A stretch of 64,000 bases of DNA from Macrostomum lignano (lineage: Eukaryota): assembly GCA_002269645.1 (NCBI GenBank), contig NIVC01001861.1, forward strand, positions 1 to 64,000. The letters run 5' to 3'. The notes beneath the pieces are model-generated. The model saw nothing but the letters and a program-made list of their open reading frames with translations, was not told the origin of the DNA and did no database searches. Shown here one piece after another: positions 3,877 through 59,445 of this stretch (positions are counted from its first letter, which is position 1; every line of letters begins with the position of its first letter). The translations under genes were made by a program, and so were the position numbers.

Positions 3877-4184
3877 TTTGATTAGGGTTAGGGGTTTGCA
3901 AATAACCTAATATTTTCAAGTATTCAGTCTTTGTTCGTACCTATTTATTATTATATCTTTTATTAACTTCCTTTCACCATTATTAATATTATTTAAGATT
4001 TTTTATTTGGTAATGCAGAGGTCAAAAACTTTACCCGGCTATTGGCTTTTTTTTGCTAACCATCTTTGTGTTTTGGTAGTTCGGTAATGTTTTTGTAGTT
4101 TATTTGGATTGGTTCAGTTTATATAGCATAATAGATTGTAGCTGTATAGTGCGATGCGGAGCTGTAATGTCCATAGATAAAAGC

Positions 4185-6972: not shown

Positions 6973-9900
6973 ATGTCCGAAGTCAATCAAGCTGGCAGCG
7001 CAGACGCACCGACCACAGGAGACGGAGCCGAAGTCTCTGGCGAGGCCTCCCAGCAGCAGCCGCAGCAGCAGAGCAGCGACAAATGGCTTGTGGCATTGAA
7101 GGATCCCACGCCTGGTCTGAACACCCTCAGCCAGTGCATGGTGCTCACTGACGTCACCGGAGATGGCGAGAATCGCCTAGTTGTAGCCGACCTCGGCGAC
7201 ACTCGCACCAACATGCGACTGCGGGTTTACAAAGGCACCGCGCTGGCTATGGAGAACACCATTATTGACCTGCCTGTTGGCGTGGCCGCCTTCTATCTGG
7301 ATACTAATACTCCCAGATCCCCGGCTGTTGCAGTGGCTTCCGGGCCTAGCGTTTTCATCTATAAGAACATGCGGCCGTACTTCCGGTGAGGCTTAGTTTA
7401 GGGGACAGGCTGAGGTTTAGTTTAGGGAAGAGGCTGAGGTTTAGTTTAGGGCAGAGGCTGAGGCTTAGTTTAGGGGGACAGGCTGAGGTTTAGTTTAGGG
7501 CAGAGGCTGAGGCTTAGTTTAGGGGGACAGGCTGAGGTTTAGTTTAGGGCAGAGGCTGAGGCTTAGTTTAGGGGGACAGGCTGAGGTTTAGTTTAGGGCA
7601 GAGGCTGAGGCTTAGTTTAGGGGGACAGGCTGAGGTTTAGTTTAGGGCAGAGGCTGAGGCTTAGTTTACGGGGACAGGCTGAGGTTTAGTTTAGGGCAGA
7701 GGCTGAGGCTTAGTTTAGGGGGACAGGCTGAGGTTTAGTTTAGGGCAGAGGCTGAGGCTTAGTTTAGGGGGACAGGCTGAGGTTTAGTTTAGGGCAGAGG
7801 CTGAGGCTTAGTTTACGGGGACAGGCTGAGGTTTAGTTTAGGGCAGAGGCTGAGGCTTAGTTTAGGGGGACAGGCTGAGGTTTAGTTTAGGGCAGAGGCT
7901 GAGGCTTAGTTTAGGGGGACAGGCTGAGGTTTAGTTTAGGGCAGAGGCTGAGGCTTAGTTTAGGGGGACAGGCTGAGGTTTAGTTTAGGGCAGAGGCTGA
8001 GGCTTAGTTTAGGGGAGTGGCTGAGGCTTAGTTTAGGGGGACAGGCTGAGGTTTAGTTTAGGGCAGAGGCTGAGGCTTAGTTTAGGGGAGTGGCTGAGGC
8101 TTAGTTTAGGGGGACAGGCTGAAGTTTAGTTTAGGGCAGAGGCTGAGGCTTAGTTTAGGGGGACAGGCTGAGGTTTAGTTTAGGGGGCAGGCTGAGGTTT
8201 AGTTTAAGGGGGAGGCTGAGGCTTAGTTTAGGGGGCAGGCTTAAGCTTAGTTTAGGCCCAGTGGGGAAGGCTGCGGCTTAGTTAAGGCCCAGTGGGGAAG
8301 GCTGAGGCTTACTCTAAATGAACAAGCTCAGTCGAAAATTAAAAAGCCTGTAACTTTGAGTGGTTTTGGTTGATGAATTTCTACATCAACATCCCGGCAG
8401 GTTCACCCTACCGCCACTGGATCTGCACCCCCTGGAGGAGGAGATCTGGGCGGCGGCCCGGGAAGGTCGCGCCTCCGCCGTCCAGGTGCGCGGCATCATC
8501 GAAGATCTTCGAAACCAGGGCGCCAGCATCACGGGTAGGTCGCAGCGGCTGCTAGCACTGCACCCCGACCAGCTGCAGGAATTCGTTGAGGCCTACAAAA
8601 CCGCCCCTCTCCGCCGGCTGAGCGTGGTGACCGCCTTGGACACGTTAAAGAAGTCGCACAGCGAGGAGGACGCGATCAGCTGCTTGGTGATGGGCACTGA
8701 GGCCTGCCAGGTGCAGGTGCTGGATCCGCAGGCCTTCACTGTGCTGGCTAAAATGCAGCTGCCCTCGCCTCCCGTGTTTCTGTGCTCATCTGGCCTGTTT
8801 GATGTGGACTATCGGATTGTGGCCGCCTGCCGGGACGGCGTCATCTATCAGCTGCGGCGGGGCGCCAAGGAGGCCACACAGGGTATGCTGGCCTGGGAAA
8901 TCTGGCTTGGGGAATCTGTTGGTAGCCATGGGAATCTTTGTTGGCAACCAGAGGAATCTTTGTTGGCAGTCCGGGGAATCTTTGTTGGTAGCCAGAGGAA
9001 TCTTTGTTGGCAGCCAGAGGAATCTTTGTTGGCAGTCTGGGGAATCTTTGTTGGCAGCCAGGGCAATCTTTGTTGGCAGCCAGAGGATCTTTGTTGGCAG
9101 CCCGGGAATCCTTATTGACAGCCTTGGGAATCTTTGTTGGGCAAGTTACGAGCGTAATTGCATAGTAACGAACACCCCCTCTCTGATACCCGTGCCCCAG
9201 GCATCAGACTGCGCGCCTCAGCCGTAGGCATGATCAGGGTTGACAAGCACATAGTCGTGGCCACCATGGACAGGCAGCTATCGGGCTACTCAACCAAGGG
9301 CAAAGAGCTCTGGCGCGCCGCCCTGCCCGCCGGTGTCACCGCCCTGGCGCCGCTCAGCCTGCCATCCAAAGGCTTCAACGCTGCTTTAGTAGCCATGGAT
9401 AACAATACCGTGTGTGTGTACAAGGACAAACTCGAGGTAGACAGATTAGTCACCGAGGACGTTGTCACGGGGATTCGATTCGGTCGCTACGGACGCGAAG
9501 AGGCCACCCTAGTTACCGTGGGCAGATCCGGCGGCTTGGCAATCTACATTCTGAAGCGCAGCGCCAAATTCGTTGATGGCGCCGGCGGAGTGGGCGGCCC
9601 GCCAGCCAAGCAGTTCAGCCGGCTGCCGCTGCCCAAGAAGACTCGCCTATTCGTTGATCAGACGCTGCGCGAACGCGACTGCGCCGTGTCGATGCATCGA
9701 CAATTTCTGCACGACCTCTACAGGCTGCGGCTGATGACGGCAGAGAACTACGTGCAGGCGTTGGAGACCAAGGCCACGCCAATCAGCGCCAGCAAGGAGG
9801 ACCCGGTTAAGCTGGCTTGCACTGTGCAAGGCGTCGGCCCCGTGTTCAGGCTGACTGTTGGCCTGCAGAATGCCAGCCTCACCACCGCTATTGCCGGGCT

Positions 9901-10462
9901 GGGCATCTCGTTTGCCTACGATGGACTGCTGTATAGGCTGGAGAAGGTCTACATTCCTGTGAGCTCTCTGCCTGAGTGTGTCCTTCCTGTGTAGCACCCG
10001 AGTATCTCCTTAGCTGTCCCTAAGTATGTCATAAGTAGCCATTGACTATCTCCTGTGTAGTACTTGAGTATCTCCTAATAGTCTGAGTATTCTATAAAGA
10101 GTCCTCGAGTTTATCCCGAATAGTCCTTAAGTATCTCACAAGTAGCCCTAGAGTCTCATTAGTTGTTGAGTATCTTAAATAATCTTGAGTGCATTATTGT
10201 CTTTAAAATTCTCATTAGAACTCTCACTAGTCTACAAGAAACTGAATTCCCAATCAAGTGTCTCACCGAACGCTGCCGAAAACTGTTTCAGGTACCCTAC
10301 CTGGTGCCCGGATTAACCTACAACTTCTCAACCATAGTGGAATGCCTGACAGACAAAGGCATAGCTGACGCAATCAAGGTGTACATATTGAAGCGGGACA
10401 ACGATTCGCCGCTAGTCACTGGCGTTGTCAATATGCCGGTCAGCGAGTCATTTGTTGTGTGA
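6973..10462 (+). CDS. BBS1: Bardet-Biedl syndrome 1 (BBSome subunit); exons 6973-7385, 8401-8882, 9201-9958, 10292-10462; 607 aa
   Basis: Motifs DVTGDGENRLVVADLG, VASGPSVFIYKNMRPYFRFTLP, LKKSHSEEDAISCLVMGTE, FGRYGREEATL, PKKTRLFVDQTLRER and VPYLVPGL..KGIADAIKV match BBS1. All junctions are GT-AG and in phase. Confidence 0.97.
7386..8315. repeat. Intronic minisatellite, 49 bp unit made of two related 24-25 bp halves
   Basis: aggctgaggtttagtttagggcagaggctgaggcttagtttagggggac repeated from the BBS1 intron 1 donor onward. Confidence 0.95.
8895..9145. repeat. Intronic minisatellite, about 21 bp unit (gggaatctttgttggcagcca)
   Basis: Tandem copies in BBS1 intron 2. Confidence 0.9.
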
Positions 10463-10574: not shown

Positions 10575-12540
10575 CTGTCTAAGCCTCCCGAAGAGCCTGT
10601 CTAAGCCTCCTTGAAGAGCCTGTCTAAGCCTCATTGAAGAGCCTGTCTAAGCCTCCTTGAAGAGCCTGTCTAAGCCTCATTGAAGAGCCTGTCTAAGCCT
10701 CCTTGAAGAGCCTGTCTAAGCCTCATTGAAGAGCCTGTCTAAGCCTCATTGAAGAGCCTGTCTAAGCCTCATTGAAGAGCCTGTCTAAGCCTCCTTGAAG
10801 AGCCTGTCTAAGCCTCCTTGAAGAGCCTGTCTAAGCCTCATTGAAGAGCCTGTCTAAGCCTCCTTGAAGAGCCTGTCTAAGCCTCCTTGAAGAGCCTGTC
10901 TAAGCCTCCTTGAAGAGCCTGTCTAAGCCTCCTTGAAGAGCCTGTCCAAGCCTCATTGAAGAGCCTGTCTAAGCCTCATTGAAGAGCCTGTCTAAGCCTC
11001 ATTGAAGAGCCTGTCTAAGCCTCATTGAAGAGCCTGTCTAAGCCTCATTGAAGAACCTGTCTAGGCCTCCCTGAAGAGCCTGTCTAAGCCTCAATAAAGA
11101 GCCCGTCTTAGTCTAAGCCTCATTGAAGAGCCTGTCTAAGCCTCATTGAAGAGCCTGTCTAAGCCTCATTGAAGAGCCTGTCTAAGCCTCATTGAAGAGC
11201 CTGTCTAAGCCTCATTGAAGAGCCTGTCTAAGCCTCCTTGAAGAGCCTGTTTAAGCCTCCTTGAAGAGCCTGTCTAAGCCTCATTGAAGAGCCTGTCTAA
11301 GCCTCATTGAAGAGCCTGTCTAAGCCTCATTGAAGAGCCTGTCTAAGCCTCATTGAAGAGCCTGTCTAAGCCTCATTGAAGAGCCTGTCTAAGCCTCATT
11401 GAAGAGCCTGTCTAAGCCTCCTTGAAGAACCTGTCTAGGCCTCCCTGAAGAGCCTGTCTAAGCCTCATTGAAGAACCTGTCTAAGCCTCATTGAAGAGCC
11501 TGTCTAAGCCTCATTGAAGAGCCTGTCTAAGCCTCATTGAAGAGCCTGTCTAAGCCTCCTTGAAGAGCCTGTCTAAGCCTCCTTGAAGAGCCTGTCTAAG
11601 CCTCATTGAAGAGCCTGTCTAAGCCTCCTTGAAGAGCCTGTCTAAGCCTCCTTGAAGAGCCTGTCTAAGCCTCCTTGAAGAGCCTGTCTAAGCCTCCTTG
11701 AAGAGCCTGTCCAAGCCTCATTGAAGAGCCTGTCTAAGCCTCATTGAAGAGCCTGTCTAAGCCTCATTGAAGAGCCTGTCTAAGCCTCATTGAAGAGCCT
11801 GTCTAAGCCTCATTGAAGAACCTGTCTAGGCCTCCCTGAAGAGCCTGTCTAAGCCTCAATAAAGAGCCCGTCTTAGTCTAAGCCTCATTGAAGAGCCTGT
11901 CTAAGCCTCATTGAAGAGCCTGTCTAAGCCTCATTGAAGAGCCTGTCTAAGCCTCATTGAAGAGCCTGTCTAAGCCTCATTGAAGAGCCTGTCTAAGCCT
12001 CCTTGAAGAGCCTGTTTAAGCCTCCTTGAAGAGCCTGTCTAAGCCTCATTGAAGAGCCTGTCTAAGCCTCATTGAAGAGCCTGTCTAAGCCTCATTGAAG
12101 AGCCTGTCTAAGCCTCATTGAAGAGCCTGTCTAAGCCTCATTGAAGAGCCTGTCTAAGCCTCATTGAAGAGCCTGTCTAAGCCTCCTTGAAGAACCTGTC
12201 TAGGCCTCCCTGAAGAGCCTGTCTAAGCCTCATTGAAGAACCTGTCTAGGCCTCCCTGAAGAGCCTGTCTAAGCCTCATTGAAGAACCTGTCTAGGCCTC
12301 CCTGAAGAGCCTGTCTAAGCCTCATTGAAGAACCTGTCTAGGCCTCCCTGAAGAGCCTGTCTAAGCCTCATTGAAGAACCTGTCTAGGCCTCCCTGAAGA
12401 GCCTGTCTAAGCCTCATTGAAGAACCTGTCTAGGCCTCCCTGAAGAGCCTGTCTAAGCCTCATTGAAGAACCTGTCTAGGCCTCCCTGAAGAGCCTGTCT
12501 AAGCCTCAATAAAGAGCCCGTCTTAGTCTAAGCCTCCCTA
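10575..12540. repeat. Minisatellite, 23 bp unit (gaagagcctgtctaagcctcatt) with a 765 bp higher-order duplication
   Basis: Tandem copies; rare variant units recur exactly 765 bp apart. Confidence 0.95.
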
Positions 12541-20827: not shown

Positions 20828-23751
20828 ATTTCCTTCCTATAAATCATTTGACGTTAGAGACATTTTACAACTCTCGCCCTACTTTATCTATTAGGCTAAC
20901 TTTATGTATGACACGACGCAAAATATTAGGAGCATCAGCGTTAATAATGCCTTGAAAGTCTTTAAATAATCGATACAACACTAGGTATTATAAAATTCCA
21001 ACCCCAAAGCTCACTGGGGCGAAAAGACTTTGTCTTCATCAACTAGTTTATTTTACCTATTTTTGTTTTATTTTTAACTTCTTGGAAAAATTTAAATCTG
21101 TTTTTTTTGTGAAAGGCCTGGCTATTCTTTCTGATCAAAATTTAATTATTTTAACTATGTACATAGACTATGCCAAATGTAAACTGAATCATTTTTGTAT
21201 GTTAATTGTATAGATTGACTGGGACTTGGAACTTTTGGTCCCATTGCTATTTTGGGAATCTCTATACACCAAGCTATATACCAAGAGGCATGCCAGGCCT
21301 CTCTGTACCCCAAGTCGTATGCCAATAGTGTACCCTAGGTCCTTCTATATGCCAGAATCCAGAGTCGGGCTAGATATACCTTTAAACAAAAATCAAATAA
21401 TTACTAATGCATGCAGAAAAAATTAAATGCATGCCAATTCTCAAAACTATGCCTGTGTCGCAACAATAAATGACATTTTTTGAATTGCATAATAGACCCT
21501 TCTTGGCAAATTATTTAGTTATTTTTTCTGCTTTTTCTATGATATTTTTATAGGCCTATTGAAAATCAATACATGCAAAAATTGTTTAAATGTTTAATTA
21601 CAAGCTTAAAAAAACTGGAAAGCTTGAAATTTATGCCTAAAAATGAACTTTTTAACCTCTTTTCTACTTCACAATAACTCTTCTATGTGATTCTATGAAG
21701 TGCATGCCAGGTATGCACGCTTACTATATTCTTAGGAGTGAATACACACCATTTGTATATGCCTACTTTTGATATGCAAGGCCAATGCACACCCAAATTT
21801 TTGGGCATATACTATATGATCTGGAGTGTGGCATGCATCATACATGTCACCTCCTAACTATGGCCTATGGCCTATGGGACATTAGTAGTAAATATATAAA
21901 AGCAAAAAATATAAAGATTATGTGATAGGCAGTGTTATATACAAATATTTTAATTTAGTTTACCTTAACAGATCCCAGTCCTTCAGGCTTATAGCCTAGG
22001 GCCTAGGAAAAATACACTACAAAATCAAAAAAATCTTGGAAAATGCCAAATGCTGAAATGGTTTCAACTTTTTTATTCTTATAACTTAGACTGATTTTTA
22101 TGAACTAAACATTTTTTAAAACCTCTCAACAAGATCTATATGATTGACTACAAATATTCCATAGGGCCTATTTTTAAACAAAAAATCTCACTGAAGGCCC
22201 TAACATTAGTAACATTAGAGTTCTATAATATAGTAGGGTAAAGCCTAGGCCTATGCTTATAATTGAAATTCGTTCCTTACCAATATTTCAAATTGATAGA
22301 ACATGATCTAAGGTTTTAGATTATACACAGGAATACTTACTCGTACAAAATGAGGGCCGAGAGACGCGTGACTCGAGTCACCGAAGAAATTATTTACTTC
22401 GTAGATTTGGCTCCCCGCTTCAACTTGATGCTTGTTGAATAGTATTTCTTGGTTAGTGACTGGCACAGGGCGAAATGGAATTGCAAAAACAGCAAAAATG
22501 TTCTGCTTCTTAGCAAATTGCTTGCCCATGAATGAAAGCCATGATTAAAATGTTTTAAATGGGGATTTAACCCGATTAAAAACTGTTAAATTTTGAAGGG
22601 ATATGTACTGGAGTCGATTAACAATGAAGAAAAGAAAATTTGAATTTATGTTTCGTTGCATCACACATTCAATACAAGCATTAATTTATAACAAAAAATT
22701 TTCTTTTTAGTAAGATCTATGGCTAAGAAGCGGATTTCTACTAGTTGAACCTAAAATTATTAGCTGGATATTATTTATATTTAGCATTATAACTTGAAAT
22801 GACACATGGTTAGAGGAGCATCTAATATTCGAGTAACTGTAAAATCCTACAAGGTTACGGTCTTAAATTATCTATTTGTCTTCACATATTGAGGAAATTT
22901 TACAACGACGACGCTTTTAGAATTAGAAACATGCAATTCGATTCTAAGTGCATTCGGCTGTATGTGCTATAAACAGTATATATGTTTTCGTTTAGAAGAT
23001 TAGATGATTGTAGTTCGTCTGGAAAATTAGAATTCAATCATGTACTTAAAAATAAAAAAGGAATGGCACAGCTCAATTCTTTATGGTTTCATTTCATGAA
23101 TCTATTTTATCATCTCTGTTACACATAACACAGCCAGCTAAGAATGATAAAATAGACCCATCAAACCAATGATCGAGCCGATCGCCGTGCCACTTAATGG
23201 GTGATTTTTGGCAGAGCCCGCAGAGAACAGGAAATAATATGTATAACAGGATAAGAAAGTCAAAATATATCGAAAGATGAACATTGGGTCTGCCTTCATC
23301 GAAAGCAATAACATTTTTTGTGCTCAAGATATGAAAACTTTCTATCTCCGAAAGTGTACCAAAAATTGGCCTGGGACGTTCTTCTCATGCTATTTAAATG
23401 TACACGCGCTGGCCGAGAAAACATACGCAAAATGACTTGATTACATGTACATGTACATTACAAATAAACTATTAGATACAACTTCTAATGAATGAGGTCA
23501 GAGAAAGTCGCGTGTGTAAATTAATTACTTGACTAGCTGGATCAGTCCCAAAATCTGAGAGTTATATAATTGAAAATTAAAACTTCAATCATTCATAATT
23601 ATGGTGTACTCAAGTCTAGACAAAATACTTTTCAAAATTAGGGTCAAAACATGCATGGAAAAATCGAAATTTTCAGTTAGGCAAGAAATCAAGTCGGGGG
23701 CGGAGTCCGGTCCGTGTCAGAGGTCAATGGGTGCAGCGGAGCGCCTGCGGC

Positions 23752-24018
23752 CTACTTGCCGTGCAGGTGGCGGTAGATCCTGTAGGCGGCCCTGGCGTAG
23801 CGGTACACCTTCCTCCACCTGATGCGGCGGAGTCTGATGCGCCACTTCTTCTGCAGCTCGGCGGCCTTCTCGTCCGTCATCTCCTGCTCGTCCATGTCGG
23901 CCAAAGCCTCCAGCGCCGCCATTGCCTCCGCGTCCTCCTCCGACATCTCCTTGCTGCTGGGTCTGGCGACGGCCAGAGCCGCGCACAGCAGGAATCCGAG
24001 AACGAACTGCCACCTCAT
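23752..24018 (-). CDS. Secreted prepropeptide, 88 aa: signal peptide + acidic propiece + cationic Arg/Trp/Tyr-rich peptide ending in GK; candidate antimicrobial peptide precursor
   Basis: MRWQFVLGFLLCAALAVA / RPSSKEMSEEDAEAMAALEALADMDEQEMTDEKAAELQ / KK / WRIRLRRIRWRKVYRYARAAYRIYRHLH-GK*. Single exon, with a TATA-like element about 95 bp upstream. Confidence 0.85.
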   Translation of the reverse strand: MRWQFVLGFLLCAALAVARPSSKEMSEEDAEAMAALEALADMDEQEMTDEKAAELQKKWRIRLRRIRWRKVYRYARAAYRIYRHLHGK

Positions 24019-24112
24019 GCTTGCTTGGTTGAGTTGTGTTGCCTGATGAAGTTGAGAAGCTAAGAGATATCTCGTTTGCTGTTGGTTGAGTTCTGCTCTC
24101 GCAGGGGTCTCG

Positions 24113-24120
24113 TATTTATG
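24113..24120 (-). promoter_or_regulatory. TATA-like box of the peptide precursor gene
   Basis: CATAAATA on the minus strand about 95 bp upstream of the ATG at 24018. Confidence 0.45.
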
Positions 24121-24304
24121 CAGATAAACTCGGCACGTTTTTCGGCAAGTTGTTTTTTTTTGTTTTCGCAATGGCCTTCACGAGCAACTGCTTTCTTTTG
24201 AGTCTGTAGGTCAAGTGCAATAAAGTTGCTCTCCTACTTCGACTCAGTGTATAATTTTATCATTGCTTGTTCGCTTTTCAAGCATAGAGCGGCATTGACC
24301 TTAA

Positions 24305-24646
24305 TAGACGGCAACCTTCAATGCTGGGAATAGCGTCTGGTGACTGAAGACATCTGAATGAAGAAGAGAGAGGAGAGAGGGGAGAGGGGAGAGGGGAGAG
24401 GAGGGAGAGGGGAGAGGAGGTAGAGAAGAGAGGAGGGAGAGGGGAGAGGGGAGAGGGGGGAGAGGGGAGAGGGAAGAGGGGAAAGAAAAGAGAAGATTAG
24501 AGAAGAAAAGATAGAAGAGAGCTGAGAAGAGACACAAACCTTGAGCGGGCCGGATTGCTTTTGTGAAGTTTCAAAGGACCCGAGGGCCGGATAGAGAGGC
24601 TTCGCGGGCCGCATGTGGCCAGTGGGCCGGAGTTGGCTGACCCCTG
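24305..24646. mobile_element. hAT-type MITE remnant with internal GA-rich tract
   Basis: The right end gcgggccgcatgtggccagtgggccggagttggctgacccctg is typical of hAT MITE termini (CAGGGG...); the left end is only partly recognisable (ggcaacctt). Confidence 0.5.
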
Positions 24647-25675: not shown

Positions 25676-26088
25676 TCACGGATAGCTGAACCCGAAGACC
25701 TGAATCTCGCAGATGCTGAGGCACTGGCCAAAGTCATTGATGACAGTCAGCTGGCTGCCGAATCTGCTGCAGCTGAAATTGCCGATTGCAAACGGAAACG
25801 TTTCGTTCCTTTCAACGCAGGTGACTCCGTCCAACTGGATTGAGAACACGTTTAACCTCTTTGCCTGGTTGTTGTCCAGCCGGTTATAGATGATCAAGTC
25901 CGAGACAAAGGATGCAGCAGGGAGGCTGGCTGTCCACCATTCCTGTCGATCAGACCCGCAGCCGGTGTGCATGCAGCAGTACCCGTTTTTAAAGTTTTGA
26001 TCCGTGTTGCCATCAATCGCATTGGAGCACGAGGCATTCTTGTACAGTGTGGACTGCGAGCAGTTTTGCAGCTGCAGTCGCTCCATCT
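25676..26088 (-). CDS. F-type lectin (fucolectin/FTP) domain exon
   Basis: CSQSTLY..ASCSNAIDGNTDQNF..CCMHTG..WW..L..VSDLIIYNRLDNNQAKRL..LSICEIQVFG has the H...RxD...R fucose-binding pattern. Strong acceptor ctaactttag at 26089, with an ATG 2 nt downstream (26086). Confidence 0.85.
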
Positions 26089-26743
26089 CTAAAGTTAGCA
26101 GGAAAACAGAACAACTACTAGAGGCCTGATTCGATGGATTTGGGAAGGGCGCTTTCACAAATTCCGTAAATTCTAAAAAGACTAGCATCCACTTTTATAG
26201 GCGTTTCACAAGGCCTAAAACAAACATCTTTGAAAGCAATGCTTTTAAAGTCTTGCTAAGTTGAGGGCTTGTGCAGCCACTAGTTTTGATTTTTATGAAA
26301 TACGAGTGGAACTCCTCCTTCGGAGGAGAAAGGGGAAGAACTCCCATCACCGGAATTCCATTCCCTGAAGTATCCATCAACTGAAGCAAATTCCATGTCT
26401 TGAACCCTATCTTCCAAATCGTCTCCAAATTCTTTACAAAACCTTTCAAAGACCATAGCTCAAAGACTCTCACGTCTCTCATATCTACTCTCTCCTCTCT
26501 TCGCTATTATCGTGACTCTCTCCTCTCTCTCCTCTCTCTCATCTCATCTCTACCCCTACTCCCTTATTTATTTATTTGCAGTTTTCCCATATAAGTTTCA
26601 ACGCTGACTTGCCAGTAGTCTAGGAGAAAAATTGCAACACACATACATACAGACAAACATCGCACCAGTTTTAGTATTAAGAAAGAGGCTTATAAAGTAT
26701 TGGTATTATGAAGTTAAAAGCCTATCTTTTAGTGTTTATTAGT

Positions 26744-27127
26744 CTAGGGTTTCTGAGCCCCCCCCCCATAGTACGCAGGTAGACTCACTGAGTGGCCGAC
26801 TGAAGACGGCTGTGTCCGGCTCCGAGACCGTCCAGCTGCCGAAGAACGCGTCGAATGCAAACAGCCGGCACAGCTCTCGGACGAAGGCGAAGCCGAAGCA
26901 GCCGCTTCGTTCAGTGCAGCGACTTCCGCATTCGATGGCGGAGCTGCCGCTGGTTGAGTGAAAGTGGGACGGCGCTGCTGAGCCAATAGCGCCGCTGCAG
27001 CCCGTGAGCCGTCAGGACTTGCAGCAGCAGCAGCAGCAGCATAGCTGCTAGCCAAGCTGATGTCTTCATGAGAGCGCAGGACTGCTAAGACGGAGTGGAT
27101 GCTGTGCGCTGCATCGGCAAACAAATA
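26744..27127 (-). CDS. Possible Ala/Ser-rich low-complexity exon of unknown gene
   Basis: GC-rich open frame of 128 codons after a possible acceptor (cctataag); no recognisable domain. Confidence 0.3.
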   Translation of the reverse strand, partial: YLFADAAHSIHSVLAVLRSHEDISLASSYAAAAAAASPDGSRAAAALLAQQRRPTFTQPAAAPPSNAEVAALNEAAASASPSSESCAGCLHSTRSSAAGRSRSRTQPSSVGHSVSLPAYYGGGAQKP

Positions 27128-27519
27128 CTTATAGGCAATGCCGCCACCGAAGGGGCGGGTCTCGTTTGCCCAACACTGCCGATTTGCTGGCTCCCGAGCA
27201 GTGGGGGCAGTGACAAAAATGGAAATAAAAAGCCGGTTTGATTTATTTTTGCAAGAGTTTCAAAACAGCGAACAGATTCAGAATTGGAGCAGGAAAGCTA
27301 TATTATATGTGATATATTATTTTAATAACAATCATCAAGTCATACGTTTTAAATTTCAACCATAAAAAATTATTTTATCGCCGTTGTTGATAGTTACAGT
27401 AAATAAGAAGAGTAGCAGCGAGATAGAGCTCAGTAGACACTACGAGAATTTTATGGCCTTGTATTTTGATACACTTGTAAAAGCTCTGCATTGAATCACA
27501 TCAAAAATATTCTAACTTT

Positions 27520-29010
27520 TCAAACCATGCAAAATTCTCTCAACCATCCCTCAGCCACCCCAGAACCACACCTCAAACACCCCTCAACCAACCAACCACC
27601 CCTCACAACCCCTCAACTACCCAATCACTCCTCAAACATCCCTAATCCACCCCTCAAACACCCTTTAACCACCCCTCAAAAACCCCTCAAACAACCCTCA
27701 AACACCCCTCAACCACCTCTCAACCACCCAACCACCCCTCAACCCCTCAACCGACCCTCAACCACCCAACCACCCCTCAACCCCTCAACCGACCCTCAAC
27801 CACCCAACCATCCCTCAACCACCCCTCAACCACCCAACCACCCCCTCAAAAACACCTCAACCACCCAACCAGCCCTCAAACACACCTAAACCACCACTCA
27901 AACACCCCCAACCACCCCTCAAACACCCCTCAACCACCCAACCATCCCTCAACCACCCCTCAACCACCCAACCACCCCCTCAAACACACCTCAACCACCC
28001 AACCAGCCCTCAAACACACCTAAACCACCCAACTACCCCTCAACCACCCCTCAACCACCCAACCACCCCCTCAAACACACCTCAACCACCCAACCAGCCC
28101 TCAAACACACCTAAACCACCACTCAAACACCCCCAACCACCCCTCAAACACCCCTCAACCACCCAACCATCCCTCAACCACCCCTCAACCACCCAACCAC
28201 CCCCTCAAACACACCTCAACCACCCAACCAGCCCTCAAACACACCTAAACCACCCAACTACCCCTCAACCACCCCTCAACCACCCAACCACCCCTCAACC
28301 ACCCAACCACCCCTCAACCACCCAACCACCCCCTCAAACACACCTCAACCCCACCCAACCACCCCCTCAAACACACCTCAACCACCCAACCACCCCTCAA
28401 CAACCCCTCAACCACCCAACCACCCCCTCAAACACACCTCAACCACCCAACCAGCCCTCAAACACACCTAAACCACCCAACCACCCCTCAACCACCCAAC
28501 CACCCCCTCAAACACACCTCAACCACCCAACCAGCCCTCAAACACACCTAAACCACCCAACTACCCCTCAACCACCCCTCAACCACCCAACCACCCCTCA
28601 ACCACCCAACCACCCCCTCAAACACACCTCAACCCCACCCAACCACCCCCTCAAACACACCTCAACCACCCAACCACCCCTCAACCACCCCTCAACCACC
28701 CAACCACCCCCTCAAACACACCTCAACCACCCAACCAGCCCTCAAACACACCTAAACCACCCAACCACCCCTCAACCACCCAACCACCCCCTCAAACACA
28801 CCTCAACCCCACCCAACCACCCCCTCAAACACACCTCAACCACCCAACTACCCCTCAACCACCCCTCAACCACCCAACCACCCTCTCAAACACACCTCAA
28901 CCACCCAACCAGCCCTCAAACACACCTAAACCACCCCTCAAACACCCCCAACCACCCCTCAAACACCCCTCAACCACCAAACCACCCCTCTTAACCATCC
29001 ACCCTTCAAC
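27520..29010. repeat. C/A-rich complex minisatellite (caaccacccct-like)
   Basis: About 1.5 kb nearly devoid of G on the + strand. Confidence 0.9.
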
Positions 29011-29029
29011 CAGAAAGACCAGTCAATGG

Positions 29030-32000
29030 CTAGTGCCGCTTGAAGTGCCTCAGCCGTCGCAGGTTGGTCTTCAGCAGGTTGATATCGCGAGACAACGTGG
29101 ATAAGTCAAGAATCACAACAAGGACGCAGAACACCACCACGATCATGATGACTACGGCGCCAACGCTTCCAGCGTTGCCTGCCTCCTTAGCCGGGGGCAC
29201 GTAGTGCTTCTGGTTGCCTTGTAGTTGGAGTGCCTCCGACTTCTCTGTTGATATTTAAGGTTGCATTAAGGCATTCACGATCGATGAGCATAATTGATAG
29301 TCTATTATCTTTTAATTCTGTGTGCCCTCTCCTTTTTGTTTAATACAGCCAAGCCACATCTCTTCCTGCGAGCTCTCGCGCTTCCCTCTTTCCAGCTTGG
29401 CACTGGCTATTTCTCACAGTTCGATTTCTAACTATTTTCTAAGAAACAAAAGTCCTTCCTGTTCGCCTCTGACTATTTTCTAAGAAACAAAAGTCCTTCC
29501 TGTTTGCCTCTGATTATTTTCTAAGAAACAAAAGTCCTTCCTGTTCGCCTCTGACTATTTTCTAAGAAACAAAAGTCCTTCCTGTTCGCCTCTGACTATT
29601 TTCTAAGAAACAAAAGTCCTTCCTGTTCGCCTCTAACTATTTTCTGAGAAACAAAAGTCCTTCCTGTTCGCCTCTGACTATTTTCTAAGAAACCAAAGTC
29701 CTTTCAGTTCGCCTCTGACTATTTTCTAAGAAACCAAAGTCCTTTCAGTTCGCCTCTGACTATTTTCTAAGAAACAAAAGTCCTTCCTGTTCGCCTCTGA
29801 CTATTTCTAAGAAACAAAAGTCCTTCCTGTTGGCCTCTGACTATTTCTAAGAAACCAAAGTCCTTCCTGTTCGCCTTTAACTATTTTCTAAGAAACAAAA
29901 GTCCTTCCTGTTCGCCTCTGTCAATTTTCTAAGAAACAAAAGTCCTTCCTGTTGGCCTCTGACTATTCTCTAAGAAACAAAAGTCCTTCCTGTTTGCCTC
30001 TGACTATTTTCTAAGAAACAAAAGTCCTTCCTGTTCGCCTCTGACTATTTTCTAAGAAACAAAAGTCCTTCCTGTTCGCCTCTAACTATTTTCTAAGAAA
30101 CAAAAGTCCTTCCTGTTCGCCTCTAACTATTTTCTGAGAAACAAAAGTCCTTTCAGTTCGCCTCTGACTATTTTCTAAGAAACAAAAGTCCTTTCAGTTC
30201 GCCTCTGACTATTTTCTAAGAAACCAAAGTCCTTTCAGTTCGCCTCTGACTATTTTCTAAGAAACCAAAGTCCTTTCAGTTCGCCTCTGACTATTTTCTA
30301 AGAAACAAAAGTCCTTCCTGTTCGCCTCTGACTATTTCTAAGAAACAAAAGTCCTTCCTGTTGGCCTCTGACTATTTCTAAGAAATCAAAGTCCTTCCTG
30401 TTCGCCTTTAACTATTTTCTAAGAAACAAAAGTCCTTCCTGTTCGCCTCTGACTATTTTCTAAGAAACAAAAGTCCTTCCTGTTTGCCTCTGACTATTTT
30501 CTAAGAAACAAAAGTCCTTCCTGTTCGCCTCTGTCAATTTTCTAAGAAACAAAAGTCCTTCCTGTTGGCCTCTGACTATTCTCTAAGAAACAAAAGTCCT
30601 TCCTGTTCGCCTCTGACTATTTTCTAAGAAACAAAAGTCCTTTCAGTTCGCCTCTGACTATTTTCTAAGAAACAAAAGTCCTTCCTGTTCGCCTCTGACT
30701 ATTTTCTAAGAAACAAAAGTCCTTCCTGTTTGCCTCTGACTATTTTCTAAGAAACAAAAGTCCTTCCTGTTCGCCTCTGTCAATTTTCTAAGAAACAAAA
30801 GTCCTTCCTGTTGGCCTCTGACTATTCTCTAAGAAACAAAAGTCCTTCCTGTTCGCCTCTAACTATTCTCTAAGAAACAAAAGTCCTTCCTGTTCGCCTC
30901 TGACTATTTTCTAAGAAACAAAAGTCCTTTCAGTTCGCCTCTGACTATTTTCTAAGAAACAAAAGTCCCAGTGAATGAGGCGTAAGACGCTGGCTCCTCA
31001 CTAATGCACTCGGGCAGATCGCTGGTATTCCACTGGCCATCGGCTTTGCAGAACAGAGCCGGCTCTCCGACGCCAGTCTCGGTGCCATTCTCGCACGTGA
31101 AGCTGATCTCAGTGGCGTAGGGGTAAGTCTCAGGTAGGTTGACCTCGATTGCGGGCACAATGGCCACTGTGCCATTTCCGTACTTCACCGTAGTTTTGGC
31201 TTTGTACTGGGCGTTCTTCACGATGGCCGCGGCGTCAGCTGTCCGACGGATGATTCTGTCTGAGAGGCAGCTGACGGCTGTTGCGGCAAGGAAAGAAGAG
31301 GACGTACGTGATTATCCTTGAGTGTCAGACTGCGAAAGACGTTTATTGCGCTTGGGTTTTTATGATTCGAAATCTTTCAAGATGCGAAACCTGTGCTCAG
31401 GAGTAACAGTTAGCAGGGAGTGAAAGTGCTCAGAGTGCTTGTTGTACTTTGAGGCAGCGTGGCCAAAACCACCAGCCAATCAGAACGCAAGAACTCTAGG
31501 CGGCGGGCAAGCCGCATACACAACAGTGCTCACTCACGCGTGCACTGCAGAGTTTTGAGCCGTTGCAGATCCGTACCCTGCGCTCCGTACCACTGCGCCT
31601 TGATGAGGCTGCCATTGGCTAGGCCGCAACGGAGCAGCTTCTCAAACTGGCGGTCCTCGAAGAAGTAGCCAATTTGACGACACTTGACGGACACCAGGTT
31701 TGGATAGAAGGGGAAACTCGACTGTTGAAATTCGCCGTAGCTCTTCTGGTCGTCGCGATTCTCCGCCTTGTACGGAGCCGCCTGGCTGCTGATCACAGTG
31801 CTGATGTCGTCGCATTTCACGGCTGGATTGGATTGGAGAGTTGCACTCAAATATAGCAAAGGTGATCATTTTATTTTATTTCTGACCAGATGTAACCAAC
31901 GGACCAAATTCGAGATCATTCGAGAAAGCCACTTAAACCCCCAGACACCCAAGGATGGGTTTCACAAACGCGAAATTTTTTGCACTTACTTTCATATACG

Positions 32001-35000
32001 AAGTCTTTTTAGCGGTTGTGAAAGTTTTGAGTAGCGGTTGTGTAAATGGTATTAAGATAACATTTAGCGGTTGTGAAGTTTCGCGTTTGTGAAGTTTCGC
32101 GTTTATGAAAGTAGGTGATTTAGCGGTTGTGAAGTTTTGCGTTTATGAAAGTAGGTGATTTAGCGGTTGTGAAGTTTTGCGTTTATGAAAGTAGGTGATT
32201 TAGCGGTTGTGAAGTTTTGCGTTTATGAAAGTAGGTGATTTAGCGGTTGTGAAGTTTCGCGTTTATGAAAGTAGGTGATTTAGCGGTTGTGAAATTTCGC
32301 GTTTATGAAAGTAGGTGATTTAGCGGTTGTGAAGTTTCGCGTTTATGAAAGTAGGTGATTTAGCGGTTGTGAAGTTTAGCGTTTATGAAAGTAGGTGATT
32401 TAGCGGTTGTGAAATTTCGCGTTTATGAAAGTAGGTGATTTAGCGGTTGTGAAGTTTCGCGTTTATGAAAGTAGGTGATTTAGCGGTTGTGAAGTTTCGC
32501 GTTTGTGAAAGCAACCCACAACCGGGACACCCAAACCCTAAGACTCAAGGAGATCACTAGAATTGGACTCTCGCGCCAAAAGTATCAGGGTTCGATTGCG
32601 CGAGCAGCCACGTTAATTTGGTGTTCTTGCACAGAAATTTGTCGGGGCCACGGATACTAAAATAGCTAGATGGGCCACTCAGGCATAAATACTTGGTAAA
32701 ACACCTGTCTACTTTCAGTTCAGTAGCAAAGAAGAATACATAAGCTATTTTATAAAAATAAAGGCAGCTGAAATTTCTTTGATAAGTTTAGAAGCCCAAG
32801 CTTGCAGGCGTAAACAACTTGCTAATTGGTTCAGCAGTAATGTAGATTGGCCAGTCCACTGGAATGTTATACATGGCAGCTTTGGCTTGGAATTCCGAGA
32901 AAAGCAATAAAAATTGAAGGGGCGAGGAGCATAGTGGGGAAAGGCGCGGTTCGAGGGTTTAGGCGGGGTGGTATTAAGAGCCAATAAATGAGCTTTGGCT
33001 TAAAAATACATTCGAATTCTTCTGTACTACTGAACTGAAAGTAGCTTACACGCAAATATACTGAGTGGCCCATCTAGTTACTCTAGCATCTGTGGCCTTA
33101 GGTAAGATTCGCGCCCAAGAGGGCCAACCTTAAGGCATGACAAGTCGACTCTTACATTACAAAACGATGAGCCTCAGGATCAACTTCTATCCTTGCTGAT
33201 TTCTACCACCTAAATTCTAAACCCATTTAGATTTGCACTTGATTGCAAACGCACCGGTGCAAGTGTTGAGGTCTGGCGGGCTCCATTCTCCCTGCGTTGG
33301 ATCCCTGAAGCTCTGGTCGCAGGCGATCTCGCCAGTAATCACACTGCTGTTCTTGTAGGACACGTAGCCTTTCTTGCAGTTGACGCTGAACTGATGCGTG
33401 TAGTTGTAGAATTCGTGCACCAGAGTGTCGGCGTACGGCATCACGTGCGGAATGCGCATGTCCGACTTCAGGATGGTGGCGTTGCAGCGAATCGCTGAAA
33501 TAATAAAATGACTTTATTTCAAGTCAAACAAAAACAAAACAAAACATCAAGCGCGAAGGTGACAGCAGCGCGCACTTGAGTCCATTTCCTCCATTCCAAG
33601 GACTGGAGGGGGGGGGTCGCCACAAACACACCCTCAATGACCCCAGCTAATGCTGGTACCCATTTTACAGCCGGATGAATTGAAGTATAATGCAGAGTTG
33701 AGTGTGTTGCTCAAGGACACCAACTGTTCCAGCATGATCGAGAATCGAACCCCCAACCTTTCACTCGTGAGTCCAATGCTCTAATCACAAGGCTACAACC
33801 ACCTCCCATTATTGTAGAGAGCATAAAACCAACTATTATGACACAAGCAACCCAGCCTCACGATAGCAGGGCTCAATCGATCCGTAGGCAAAGGTGCCAT
33901 TAGCCAAGCAGAACGCTTGATGCGGCAGCAGGCCCTCCGGTGTGGGCGTCGCCGCCGGAGTCTTCGCTAACGGCCTGTCGCTGTTCCTGTAGAAGCCGGG
34001 CCGACAGCGGATGTCGGACAGCAGCCCGTGATGAGGCACATTCTCGAGGTGCAGGCCATAGCTGATGTTCGACATGACCATCGTCAGAGGGTTGAGGCCG
34101 CGGATCTGGGACACGGAGCATGTGCTGGCTGGGGACGTTGGTGTGAGGGGGGAGCATATTGTGAAACCCAAACATTCTACTACTCTTCAGTAGTACGAGT
34201 AATTGTCGCAGATTTCAGTTAGAAAGCGCACCTGGCTTCTCGCAGACCACGGTAAAATTGTTGGTGCAGCTCTCGGCTCGAAGGCCCGAGCTGGGCGCCC
34301 AGTAGCCGCTAGCAGACGCGACGCTCACATCGATGATCAGCCGGCTGCAGTTCCGACCGGCCGGGCTCGCTGGCAAACCGCCGGGGGACCAGAACTTGCT
34401 GTCCACAGAGGCACTGGTAGCCTGCCAGATCCATTCGCTGTCTGCAGAGGGTGGCAGCATTAAGTCTTATACTGTACTGAAAGAGGGCACTGAAATCCAA
34501 AACAATCATCGAATCCATGAGGCAGAATTAGACTTGAAAGAACTTTCTCGGACGCATTCAAATGACATACGAAAACTCACGCAAAGATCCATTGCACGCA
34601 TTACAGTTTAGACAAAAAGGTACAACGCTCATGCAGCAACCGACCGTTCTTGGGCGACACAACCGCGTCGGCCCAGATGCTCGCCCCGGTGAACAGCACC
34701 GCCATGCAGTAGGCCGACAGGTCGAATACGTTCGCATCTCCGTCCACTCTGGCCAGACTGCCGCCAGCGGTGGCGCATCGTTGCCGCGCGGTCTCTCGGC
34801 CGACGGGAGCGTAGACGCTGCCGAGACGTTGGTAGCACTTGCCAGACACCGGCATGTAGGTCCACTCAGAGCCTGAGCACACTGTGGCACCGTTCACTGG
34901 CGGCATCGCATTGGCCGAAGACTGGAAATCTGCAGGTAAATCACCGAAGTGAAACTTAAGTTTAGGAACTCAAGGACTACTAAAGTAGAAGGAAGCAGCG

Positions 35001-37800: not shown

Positions 37801-38214
37801 CTCGTGCACTCCTGTGTGAGTGTGTGCATGCCTGCGTACGTATCCGCGCGCTTGTATGCCTGCTCAGGGGAGTCGGCGGAATGGGTAGTTCTCGCCGGTT
37901 GTGTGCCTATGTCGCTTAAAGTGCGCCAGGGTGCACACAACCCCCTGCCTCTAATAAAAAAATTTAATGCTCCAGCGGGTTTGATACCTCTTCCTGCTGG
38001 CTGTAGCACAATTGAGGGAGCAAACATGGAAATAAATGATAGCATTTCTATAGTGTGGGCAAAGGCTTGAGCGACGACGACTAAGGGATCGATCGACTCT
38101 GCGAAATGGATCCTTGGCTGTTATTTTTCAATTAGGATTTTGTTACGCCGAAGCGATAAGTTAACTATTTTCGAAGCTAAAACGCTAGCAAAATACGTAA
38201 CGATGCAACATGTC

Positions 38215-39790
38215 AAACATAAAAGAAGCGGCATGTCAACCATGAAAGAAGCGGCATGTCAAACATGAAAGAAGCGGCATGTCAACCATGAAAGAAGCGG
38301 CATGTCAACCATAAAAGAAGCACCATTCAAGCGTAAAAGAAGCACCATGTCAAGCGTAAAAGAAGCACCATGTCAAGCGTAAAAGAAGCGCCATGTCAAA
38401 CATAAAAGAAGCGCCATGTCAACCATAAAAGAAGCGCCATGTCAAACATAAAAGAAGCGCCATGTCAAACATAAAAGAAACTTCATGTCAAACATAAAAG
38501 AAGCGCCATGTCAACCATAAAAGAAACTTCATGTCGAACATAAAAGAAGCGTCATGTCAACCATAAAAGAAACTTCATGTCGAACATAAAAGAAGCGTCA
38601 TGTCAAACATAAAAGAAACTTCATGTCAAACATAAAAGAAGCGCCATGTCAAACATGAAAGAAGCGTCATGTCAAACATGAAAGAAGCGTCATGTCAAAC
38701 ATGAAAGAAGCGTCATGTCAACCATAAAAGAAACTTCATGTCAAACATAAAAGAAACTTCATGTCAAACATAAAAGAAGCGTCATGTCAAACATAAAAGA
38801 AACTTCATGTCGAACATAAAAGAAGCGTCATGTCAAACATAAAAGAAGCGTCATGTCAAACATAAAAGAAGCGTCGTTTCAAACATAAAAGAAACTTCAT
38901 GTCAAACATAAAAGAAGCGTCATGTCAAACATAAAAGAAGCGTCATGTCAAACATAAAAGAAACTTCATGTCAAACATAAAAGAAGCGTCATGTCAAACA
39001 TAAAAGAAGCGTCATGTCAAACATAAAAGAAGCGTCATGTCAAACATAAAAGAAGCGTCATTTCAAACATAAAAGAAACTTCATGTCAAACATAAAAGAA
39101 GCGTCATGTCAAACATAAAAGAAGCGTCATGTCAAACATAAAAGAAACTTCATGTCAAACATAAAAGAAGCGTCATGTCAAACATAAAAGAAGCGTCATG
39201 TCAAACATAAAAGAAACTTCATGTCAAACATAAAAGAAGCGTCATGTCAAACATAAAAGAAGCGTCATGTCGAACATAAAAGAAGCGTCATGTCAAACAT
39301 AAAAGAAGCGTCATGTCGAACATAAAAGAAGCGTCATGTCAAACATAAAAGAAGCGTCATGTCAAACATAAAAGAAACTTCATGTCGAACATAAAAGAAG
39401 CGTCATGTCAAACATAAAAGAAGCGTCATGTCAAACATAAAAGAAGCGTCATTTCAAACATAAAAGAAACTTCATGTCAAACATAAAAGAAGCGTCATGT
39501 CAAACATAAAAGAAGCGTCATGTCAAACATAAAAGAAACTTCATGTCAAACATAAAAGAAGCGTCATGTCAAACATAAAAGAAGCGTCATGTCAAACATA
39601 AAAGAAACTTCATGTCAAACATAAAAGAAGCGTCATGTCAAACATAAAAGAAGCGTCATGTCAAACATAAAAGAAGCGTCATGTCAAACATAAAAGAAGC
39701 GTCATGTCGAACATAAAAGAAGCGTCATGTCAAACATAAAAGAAGCGTCATGTCAAACATAAAAGAAGCGTCATGTCAGACATAAAAGAC
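38215..39790. repeat. Minisatellite, 23 bp unit (catgtcaaacataaaagaagcgt)
   Basis: Tandem copies, intergenic. Confidence 0.95.
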
Positions 39791-44977: not shown

Positions 44978-44994
44978 CTGGAATTGGAGAATGC

Positions 44995-45150
44995 CGTGTG
45001 AGCGCGGCAGTTCACTGAATGATGCTGTGTGAGAGTGCGGCAGTTCACTGAATGATGCTGTGTGAGTGCGGCAGTTCACTGAATGATGCTGTGTGAGAGT
45101 GCAGAAGTTCACTGAATGATGCTGTGTGAGAGTGCAGAAGTTCACTGAAT
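44995..45150. repeat. Short minisatellite (gcagttcactgaatgatgctgtgtgagagt-like)
   Basis: About 5 copies upstream of the DCTD acceptor; these create the false N-terminal extension in the ORF track. Confidence 0.85.
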
Positions 45151-55549: not shown

Positions 55550-55639
55550 CTGGAAATTGTACAGGATTGTGTCATTGTAGCAGCCTTATGCCTCATGCGG
55601 ATCGACCTTACAGCGATCCAAGATTCTCTAGGCGGTCTA

Positions 55640-58254: not shown

Positions 58255-59445
<1,191 letters not shown>

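Follow-up and report, generated by a model that had tools for sequence, protein, structure and literature searches.

A Macrostomum family of putative amidated cationic peptides whose precursors resemble those of Hydra arminins

The design in which a signal peptide and an acidic propiece precede a cationic peptide is well known. In frogs, the precursors of the preprodermaseptin type (dermaseptins, temporins, brevinins) are tripartite, with a signal peptide and acidic propiece forming a 'cassette' that leads through a dibasic site to a variable cationic peptide, frequently amidated by way of glycine; mammalian alpha-defensins provide a parallel in their charge-neutralising prosegment. The closest described system is that of the Hydra arminins, where the 1a precursor (ARM1A_HYDVU; also 1c, ARM1C_HYDVU) comprises 88 amino acids (aa), of which the first 18 form the signal and the next 39 an acidic part, followed by a cationic part of 31 aa with GKK at its end. 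Arminin 1a-C (KPWRFRRAIRRVRWRKVAPYIPFVVKTVGKK) has been used as an amidated cationic antimicrobial peptide (AMP) with a charge of +13 (PMC6217004). Hydra AMP families have a bipartite layout of charge, are restricted to the genus and lie in tandem clusters, and the arminins are reported to be confined to Hydra (PMC10945409). The subject of this report is a gene at positions 23752–24018, on the minus strand, of a 64,000-nucleotide (nt) stretch of the flatworm Macrostomum lignano (contig NIVC01001861.1, positions 1 to 64,000), referred to throughout as the window. On balance, and with considerable doubt, the gene is taken to encode a secreted, charge-neutralised cationic defence peptide that is processed at KK, amidated at the C-terminus and functionally arminin-like, within a lineage-restricted and fast-diversifying family. 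Innate-immunity effector peptides of flatworms are almost unknown; orphan AMP-like families are common.

The gene and its predicted precursor

The open reading frame (ORF) extends in a single exon from an ATG at 24018 to a TAG at 23752–23754, a length of 267 nt or 88 codons, and its product (88 aa) is MRWQFVLGFLLCAALAVARPSSKEMSEEDAEAMAALEALADMDEQEMTDEKAAELQKKWRIRLRRIRWRKVYRYARAAYRIYRHLHGK. The strand was missing from the first-pass annotation and was set here as minus; every figure given there for this ORF was reproduced when residues were recounted. That annotation had also called the gene intronless, and indeed the coding sequence (CDS) is uninterrupted, while the transcript-derived model of a paralogue (P0002) likewise consists of one coding exon, of 270 nt. 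A longer ORF of 139 aa in the six-frame list, starting at TTG, was rejected as artefactual, being a product of bacterial start rules; what it adds upstream is the 5' untranslated region (UTR) and the TATA region.

This is a real and intact single-exon gene of M. lignano with its own promoter, as shown by base composition, by conservation of the TATA box, promoter and 5' UTR, by the substitution pattern and by transcription of a paralogue. The ORF is a sharp island of 64–66% GC between flanks of 30–40%, and GC at third codon positions (GC3) is 0.92. The ratio of non-synonymous to synonymous differences per site (pN/pS) was below 1 in most comparisons of the window copy with its paralogues. A unit of about 600 bp (23692–24300), containing the promoter, 5' UTR, CDS and first 60 nt of the 3' UTR, recurs at no fewer than nine other places in M. 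lignano. Its elements, and those of the precursor, are as follows:

24129–24146, minus strand: promoter motif GCCGAAAAACGTGCCGAG, with core GGAAAAACGTGC, preceding the TATA box by about 10 nt; invariant in 9 of 9 copies
24113–24119, minus strand: TATA-like box ATAAATA; ATAAAT invariant in 9 of 9 copies
24019–24088, minus strand: 5' UTR with predicted 5' end; block CAGCTTCTCA.CTTCATCAGGC.ACA kept in all copies
23965–24018, minus strand: signal peptide, residues 1–18, MRWQFVLGFLLCAALAVA; n-, h- and c-regions, A-x-A before the cut
23851–23964, minus strand: anionic propiece, residues 19–56; 13 Asp/Glu and 3 Arg/Lys, net charge -10
23845–23850, minus strand: Lys-Lys (Lys57-Lys58), putative prohormone-convertase site; kept across the family
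23761–23844, minus strand: predicted mature peptide WRIRLRRIRWRKVYRYARAAYRIYRHLH, 28 aa, charge +11 by residue counts
23755–23760, minus strand: Gly-Lys, putative amidation signal; G, GK or GKR end kept in the family
23752–23754, minus strand: stop codon TAG
23692–23751, minus strand: GC-rich block opening the 3' UTR, about 60 nt long; 84% mean identity among paralogues

The promoter and 5' UTR were aligned for nine copies, the divergent paralogues L002 and L004 included. Another divergent gene, L005, has the near-identical motif GGAAAAACGTGG ahead of its TATA (about 393–428), and the GGAAAAACGTGC motif is a candidate regulatory site specific to the family. The TATA-like box precedes the ATG by about 95 nt and the predicted transcript start by about 30 nt; partial proteins derived from transcripts (P0005 is one) continue past the position equivalent to approximately 24082 in the window, which fits a start about 30 nt downstream of the box. 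There is no upstream ATG in the 5' UTR, and the forward primer used for in situ hybridisation of a paralogue maps to 24019–24042 with two mismatches. The core promoter was 94% identical to that of the paralogue L1_37055, which lies inside the transcript-derived model P0001. Beyond the stop codon, the first block of the 3' UTR (84% identity) was better conserved than the part encoding the mature peptide (73%) and the remaining 3' UTR (45%); an RNA-structure reading of this block was discarded, since it neither folded stably (z = +0.68) nor showed covariation.

The earlier description of the layout as signal, acidic propiece, KK, cationic peptide and Gly-Lys held, and was strengthened at the level of the family. 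Eighteen hydrophobic residues with A-V-A at the cut are followed by a 38-aa spacer, KK, the 28-aa peptide, GK and the stop codon. The mature peptide contains 10 Arg, 1 Lys, 2 Trp, 4 Tyr and 2 His, with no acidic residue and no Cys. Amphipathicity was significant at about 150 degrees in its first 13 residues (p = 0.004), a periodicity of the extended, strand-like kind, and at 100–105 degrees in its last 16 (p <= 0.002), as in a helix bearing a stripe of Arg. A Pfam scan of the precursor returned sub-threshold noise only (PycTM, UPF0149), and a sequence search of the PDB with the mature peptide gave no meaningful match.

The role of a C-terminal Gly-Lys or Gly-Arg in amidation is textbook knowledge. 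Under the proposed mechanism, the 18-aa signal peptide would take the precursor into the secretory pathway; while the precursor is transported and stored, its 38-aa propiece (-10) would neutralise the C-terminal polycation (+11). An enzyme of the prohormone-convertase type would cleave after Lys57-Lys58, a carboxypeptidase would trim the final Lys, and peptidylglycine alpha-amidating enzymes would turn Gly87 into a C-terminal amide. The released WRIRLRRIRWRKVYRYARAAYRIYRHLH-NH2, with a computed monoisotopic mass of 3882.26 Da, would combine an extended amphipathic Arg/Trp N-terminal half with an amphipathic helical Arg/Tyr C-terminal half, and could act as a membrane-active host-defence peptide, the functional analogue of Hydra arminin 1a-C. 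Prohormone convertase 2 and amidated peptides are both documented in flatworms (PMC2953531). Secretion, cleavage, amidation and antimicrobial activity, as well as the producing tissue and the expression of this copy, are what we infer for the gene.

A diversifying family within Macrostomum

The best relatives found by protein search were all from M. lignano and all named 'hypothetical' or 'uncharacterized'; the window protein was 76–86% identical to P0001–P0003 and to the copies on contig L001 (NIVC01001664.1). Among 1.84 billion representative proteins, a profile search gave 10 matches, nine of them from M. lignano and the tenth from a 929-bp contig of a public sequencing run for which no species is stated. 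A second profile search, of a 5.8-billion collection, yielded 27 clusters (90% identity), again under that taxonomic restriction. No match was obtained outside Macrostomum in either search (E <= 0.001 among the 1.84 billion representatives, E <= 0.01 in the 5.8-billion collection), and thus no orthologue in another flatworm. On these searches, this is a multigene family restricted to Macrostomum, with at least 27 distinct sequences. It is marked by the signature M[KR]WQ..LG.LLC within a near-invariant 18-aa signal, an L-EAL core in the propiece, a K, KK or KKK site and a basic C-terminal peptide; the window gene has all of these, together with the common promoter motif, TATA box, 5' UTR block and 3' UTR block.

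Several members are clustered in tandem within 27 kb of contig L001 (9700–37400):

10001, 18340 and 37055: three intact copies
26354, minus strand: one frameshifted copy
17007, minus strand: one pseudogene
33519 and 35162: two stubs consisting of the promoter plus eight codons

The GenBank model P0001 (Mlig001477g4, 139 aa) was recognised as a chimera of the first and last of these tandem copies, which are 27 kb apart. A different kind of error affects P0004 (UniProt A0A1I8JEL3, 'Sushi domain-containing protein', 634 aa), whose exons align one after another with the minus strand of the window, from 34061 to 23755, at 79–100% identity; its last 69 residues correspond to the window ORF and its mature peptide is identical. 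The window is thus M. lignano DNA, of a different haplotype, subgenome or assembly from P0004. As a description of the peptide as the C-terminus of a large receptor-like protein, P0004 was rejected as a fusion artefact: the last exon of the upstream gene stops at 25676–25678, a separate TATA box, 5' UTR, ATG and signal peptide belong to the peptide gene, and the paralogues L001–L004 lack any match to the coding part of the upstream gene. The first-pass annotation had recognised no known family. This stands in so far as the database relatives are all hypothetical proteins, but the gene itself was already on record, fused within P0004. None of 14 gene identifiers of the family was found in the text of a paper, nor was that of the transcript, and no paper was found that describes antimicrobial or Arg-rich secreted peptides of Macrostomum; the supplementary tables of PMC5816591, PMC5946080 and PMC12896417 had no relevant entry, and further family identifiers were absent from PMC7336406. 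The gene family is therefore uncharacterised, and present in databases only as hypothetical proteins.

Precursors were parsed for 23 distinct members. All 23 have the near-invariant signal M[KR]WQ..LG.LLC..L and an acidic propiece; the junction is KK or KKK in 21 and a single K in the other two; and 20 end in G, GK or GKR, despite variation in the residues that precede. The peptides between the junction and the C-terminal signal are 6 to 34 residues long and are of two classes. Those of the long class, to which the window peptide belongs, have 18–34 aa, a charge of +6 to +16 and a core RIRWR[RK]V...YR.YR. The short class (members P0009–P0012 and P0018–P0033) has 6–10 residues in near-perfect alternation of hydrophobic residues with Arg or His, and a Gly end, as in FVRVRVRL-G, IFRVRVRI-G, WLRVRARVRI-G, FVRVHVRF-G, GFHVHFH-G, FIHIHF-G and FHLHLP-GK. 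P0006 (L005 541–813, on the sequencing-run contig mentioned above) carries LPRVR repeats that recall proline/arginine-rich antimicrobial peptides. The peptides vary so much that retention of the cleavage and amidation signals on either side argues for use of these signals. The suggestion that the propiece balances the charge of the peptide gained support from a negative correlation between their net charges across the 23 members, calculated without regard to shared ancestry (Spearman -0.85).

Divergence was unevenly distributed along the precursor. When differences were pooled over six intact copies, pN and pS were 0.022 and 0.073 for the signal (ratio 0.30), 0.078 and 0.269 for the propiece with KK (0.29), and 0.230 and 0.359 for the mature peptide with GK (0.64); mean nucleotide identity was 0.96, 0.89 and 0.73 for the signal, propiece and mature peptide respectively, 0.84 for the first part of the 3' UTR and 0.45 for the rest. 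Synonymous change exceeded non-synonymous change in every segment, and all indels but one codon fell in the mature part. By these estimates, the mature part evolves about three times faster than the prepro part, so that the peptide-coding region forms a trough of divergence between conserved flanks. Such a trough is known from the precursors of frog antimicrobial peptides and cone-snail toxins, and is the reverse of the pattern in neuropeptide precursors. With its mature part as the fastest-evolving segment, the family thus appears to have evolved in the manner of AMPs or toxins.

Comparison with arminins and other peptide precursors

Arminin was the single a priori candidate tested, having been named in the first-pass annotation for its layout, and the likeness proved to be closer than had been noted. 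The window precursor has 18 + 38 (+KK) + 28 (+GK) residues, so that both precursors total 88 aa with matching segment lengths, and both contain the motif RR[IV]RWRKV. In the alignment of WRIR--LRRIRWRKVYRY in the window peptide with WRFRRAIRRVRWRKVAPY in arminin, there were 12 identities among 16 aligned residues, following the pattern WR.R..RR[IV]RWRKV..Y; the Smith-Waterman score of 57 (z = 5.8) was reached by none of 3000 composition-preserving shuffles. Other paralogues of the long class gave p = 0.003–0.03 against arminin 1a-C, and BLASTP of the window protein against arminin gave E = 0.19. Profile comparison by hhalign against an arminin alignment produced a probability of 89% with three family sequences (E = 2e-6, score 36.2, 76 columns) and 95% with twelve (E = 4.8e-8, score 46.1, 82 of 88 columns). 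When arminin columns were shuffled within the three segments, scores fell to 13.0 +/- 3.2 and 15.9 +/- 4.2, never reaching the observed values, and the cationic part alone scored 25.0 against 9.7 +/- 2.5 for shuffled columns. The probability was 88% when the window-type members were removed from the family alignment and 1.7% for the short class alone. The similarity therefore exceeds what a common tripartite composition would produce.

The source of this signal was located by shuffling one segment at a time. Shuffling the cationic part lowered the score by about 17–20 units and shuffling the signal by about 8–9 units, the latter representing a generic signal-peptide layout, while shuffling the acidic part caused no loss, its likeness being compositional. 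The order-specific signal was thus confined to about 22 Arg/Trp columns, plus the generic contribution of the signal peptide. Searches with family profiles retrieved only Macrostomum proteins and no arminin; a query with arminin 1a-C, for which the 31-aa peptide was duplicated in tandem solely for retrieval, returned only Hydra proteins.

Two histories would account for these observations. Convergence on an Arg/Trp motif and a precursor design seems the likelier, because the match lies in the fastest-evolving segment, the best-conserved segments have no specific match and reciprocal retrieval fails. That arminins and the flatworm family are deep homologues, descended from one ancient eumetazoan AMP gene, would be compatible with a defence role for the window peptide; the hhalign probabilities (including that obtained without the window subfamily), the identical total and segment lengths and the failure of segment-preserving shuffles to reach the observed score all favour it. 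Descent would, however, predict the opposite distribution of similarity, with specific matches in the signal and propiece, where conservation within the family is greatest and the acidic part is no better than shuffled; the short members have no arminin similarity, and the arminins are reported to be confined to Hydra (PMC10945409). Deep homology is accordingly regarded as quite improbable. If it were true, a lineage of charge-neutralised, amidated Arg/Trp host-defence peptides would be older than the split between cnidarians and bilaterians, two 'orphan' AMP families would be joined, and fast divergence would be what makes each appear genus-specific. Whether homologous or convergent, resemblance to a peptide that is antimicrobial according to the literature raises the prior for a membrane-active window peptide, and the precursor design and core motif would provide a clear case of one or the other.

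There are also differences between the two systems. The cleavage site is KK-W in the flatworm and A-K-P-W in arminin, and the C-terminal halves are dissimilar, being a predicted Arg/Tyr helix in the former and Pro/Val-rich in the latter; the acidic part has no position-specific similarity and the signal only a generic one. Both families are genus-restricted, tandemly clustered and fast-evolving. Arminins are expressed in the endodermal epithelium (PMC10945409), whereas the records for a flatworm paralogue are 'gonads' or non-regional. Bactericidal activity is established for arminin and putative for the flatworm peptide.

Dermaseptin-type precursors had also been proposed as a model for the layout. 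They share with the flatworm family a conserved prepro region, a dibasic site and a faster-diverging cationic mature domain, and the comparison stands as an analogy in this respect; it does not extend to a homologous Lys-Arg cassette, since the flatworm site is KK rather than KR. The flatworm peptide is, moreover, Arg-rich rather than Lys-rich, its CDS is intronless and it has no sequence similarity to the frog precursors; no amphibian protein was among the matches of the protein and profile searches. As in mammalian alpha-defensins, the anionic charge of the propiece scales with the cationic charge of the peptide, but the flatworm peptide is linear, cysteine-free and predicted to be amidated, the folds are unrelated and the processing enzymes differ. 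Designed beta-sheet antimicrobial peptides alternate hydrophobic with cationic residues, (IRIK)2-NH2 being one example. The short members FVRVRVRL-G, IFRVRVRI-G and WLRVRARVRI-G resemble them, as natural alternating octa- to decamers for which amidation is predicted, while the window peptide alternates only in its N-terminal half. Should these peptides be active, they would constitute a natural structure-activity series, from amides of 6–10 residues with alternating hydrophobic and Arg or His positions to Arg/Trp/Tyr peptides of 28–34 residues.

Expression evidence and alternative functions

The paralogue gene models in GenBank were produced by genome-guided RNA-seq assembly rather than ab initio (PMC5730564), so that the annotated family members were assembled from RNA-seq transcripts. 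One transcript, RNA815_1838.3 (501 nt), is listed with the in situ pattern 'gonads', credited to the study of socially sensitive genes by Ramm et al. 2019, and mapped to Mlig001477.g4 (PMC7336406 Table S11). Its primers matched L001:9977–10340 exactly and gave the stated probe length of 364 nt; the paralogue there encodes ...KKWLGRRRRVRIRWRKVLRLVYRIYRHMPLGK and shares 86% nucleotide identity with the window copy. In the positional RNA-seq design, fragment A is reportedly the head piece, cut in front of the gonads. Fragments A to D contained 93, 94, 49 and 176 reads of RNA815_1838.3, which was placed in class 0,0,0, meaning no positional bias (PMC4490696). If fragment A lacks gonads, the transcript is equally represented in gonad-free tissue. 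The in situ and positional records of the same transcript conflict. Cross-hybridisation and multi-mapping among at least 27 paralogues may affect both data sets.

The first-pass annotation had proposed a secreted, membrane-active defence peptide. Layout, conserved processing signals, charge covariation and the arminin likeness agree with this proposal, and the tissue record, 'gonads' or non-regional, does not. Several other observations weigh against it. The only in situ pattern of a close paralogue is in the gonads and not in epidermis, gut or mucus glands, its positional RNA-seq is low-level as well as non-regional, and transcript evidence comes from paralogues, none of it being specific to the window copy. 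The mean pN/pS of the mature part, at 0.64, is below 1 and does not demonstrate positive selection, and the charge correlation (n = 23) takes no account of shared ancestry. For the whole peptide, the helical hydrophobic moment at 100 degrees was not significant; the AlphaFold2 model was all-helical, but of low confidence (predicted local distance difference test, pLDDT, 59), and was not used for fold search. The internal RR and RK sites could undergo further cleavage, an RK cut leaving VYRYARAAYRIYRHLH-NH2 (computed 2106.15 Da). No canonical poly(A) hexamer was present within 500 nt downstream of the ORF, and the paralogue L1_37055 likewise has none within 500 nt.

A signal peptide, a basic cleavage site and a Gly-amide signal are typical of prohormones in general, and of the amidated neuropeptides of flatworms in particular; an amidated product acting on a receptor, possibly in regulation of the gonads, was considered for this reason and is judged improbable. 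The short members are predicted to yield 6–10-aa amides in -RFamide, -RLamide or -RIamide (FVRVHVRF-G, FVRVRVRL-G), which recall FMRFamide-like and myomodulin-like peptides such as AVRLMRLamide, and a gonadal pattern would suit peptide hormones, which control germline development in planarians (PMC2953531). Molecules that are both neuropeptide and AMP exist in Hydra (PMC10945409). However, the C-terminal residues, normally those that bind the receptor, vary among close paralogues (HLH, MPL, PFP, LPI, RLL, IIC), and the mature part is the fastest to evolve while spacer and signal are conserved, in reverse of neuropeptide precursors. Unlike flatworm neuropeptide precursors, those of the family have a single peptide copy, a variable C-terminus and, in the window type, long and highly charged peptides (28–34 aa, +10 to +16); the family as a whole has at least 27 paralogues. 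The profile searches returned no orthologue from any other flatworm or animal, and RNA815_1838.3 was not enriched in the head fragment, which holds the brain.

It is likewise unlikely that the product is a reproduction-related secreted peptide without a primary immune role, such as a gamete or egg factor or a component of sexual selection. The 'gonads' entry of RNA815_1838.3 and its origin in a study of socially sensitive genes point in this direction, and rapid evolution with lineage restriction is typical of reproductive proteins in Macrostomum (PMC7336406). Yet the same transcript belongs to class 0,0,0 and has an equal relative level in head-only fragments, which are said to lack gonads; no family member occurs among the prostate or seminal-fluid entries of PMC7336406 Table S11; and the arminin-like motif, together with the design of a polycation whose charge is neutralised, suggests a membrane-active effector. 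A reproductive role would in any case overlap with defence, as in Hydra periculin, a maternal AMP of the female germline (PMC10945409). A defence peptide made in the gonads would have a possible parallel in the periculins, although these are larger, contain Cys and have no sequence relation to the flatworm family, and gonadal expression is contradicted here by the positional RNA-seq. If the 'gonads' pattern holds, defence peptides would be linked to protection of the germline or eggs in a hermaphrodite model of sexual selection.

Very improbable, finally, is that the family is active but the window copy a duplicate that is silent or decaying, its ORF having no function of its own: no transcript or annotation is specific to this copy, the protein collection does not contain its exact protein, frameshifted, pseudogene and promoter-only copies exist in the family and the poly(A) hexamer is lacking, but the ORF, TATA box, promoter motif and 5' UTR are intact, the core promoter is nearly that of L1_37055, pN/pS (below 1 in most comparisons) and GC3 are those given above, and an independent assembly has the identical mature peptide (P0004).

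A defence peptide of arminin-like function is therefore retained as the preferred explanation, and the family is directly testable in M. lignano, which a 2021 paper describes as the only flatworm with stable transgenesis; RNA interference, in situ hybridisation and the transparency of the animal are further advantages. The compact promoter, of about 300 bp, would be usable for reporters.

A purine-rich (GAGAGG/GGGAGA)n tract with GC skew of up to +0.89 occupies 24340–24540, just upstream of the block of homology shared by the peptide genes. Minisatellites are dense across the window, with periods of 15–49 nt and up to 84 copies (for example at 4171–5543, 10575–12523, 27539–28990, 29427–30968, 38209–39789, 47499–48711, 55623–57543, 58252–59445 and 60820–62189), and are accompanied by (GATA)n and (AGAC)n tracts; many long spurious ORFs of the six-frame list result from these repeats. 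Immediately upstream of the peptide gene, and on the same strand, is a multi-exon gene (25676–34061, minus strand) with Sushi/CCP-type, transmembrane and F5/8 type C (discoidin/lectin-like) parts; its last exon is the ORF at 25676–26188, where F5_F8_type_C_2 was matched just below the Pfam cut-off (E = 9.5e-6). Further away are two ordinary housekeeping neighbours, namely the exons of a Bardet-Biedl syndrome 1 (BBS1)-like gene at 6973–9994 on the plus strand (GAE_BBS1, E = 3.5e-9) and those of a dCMP/cytidine deaminase gene at 44435–45145 on the minus strand (E = 4.4e-26).

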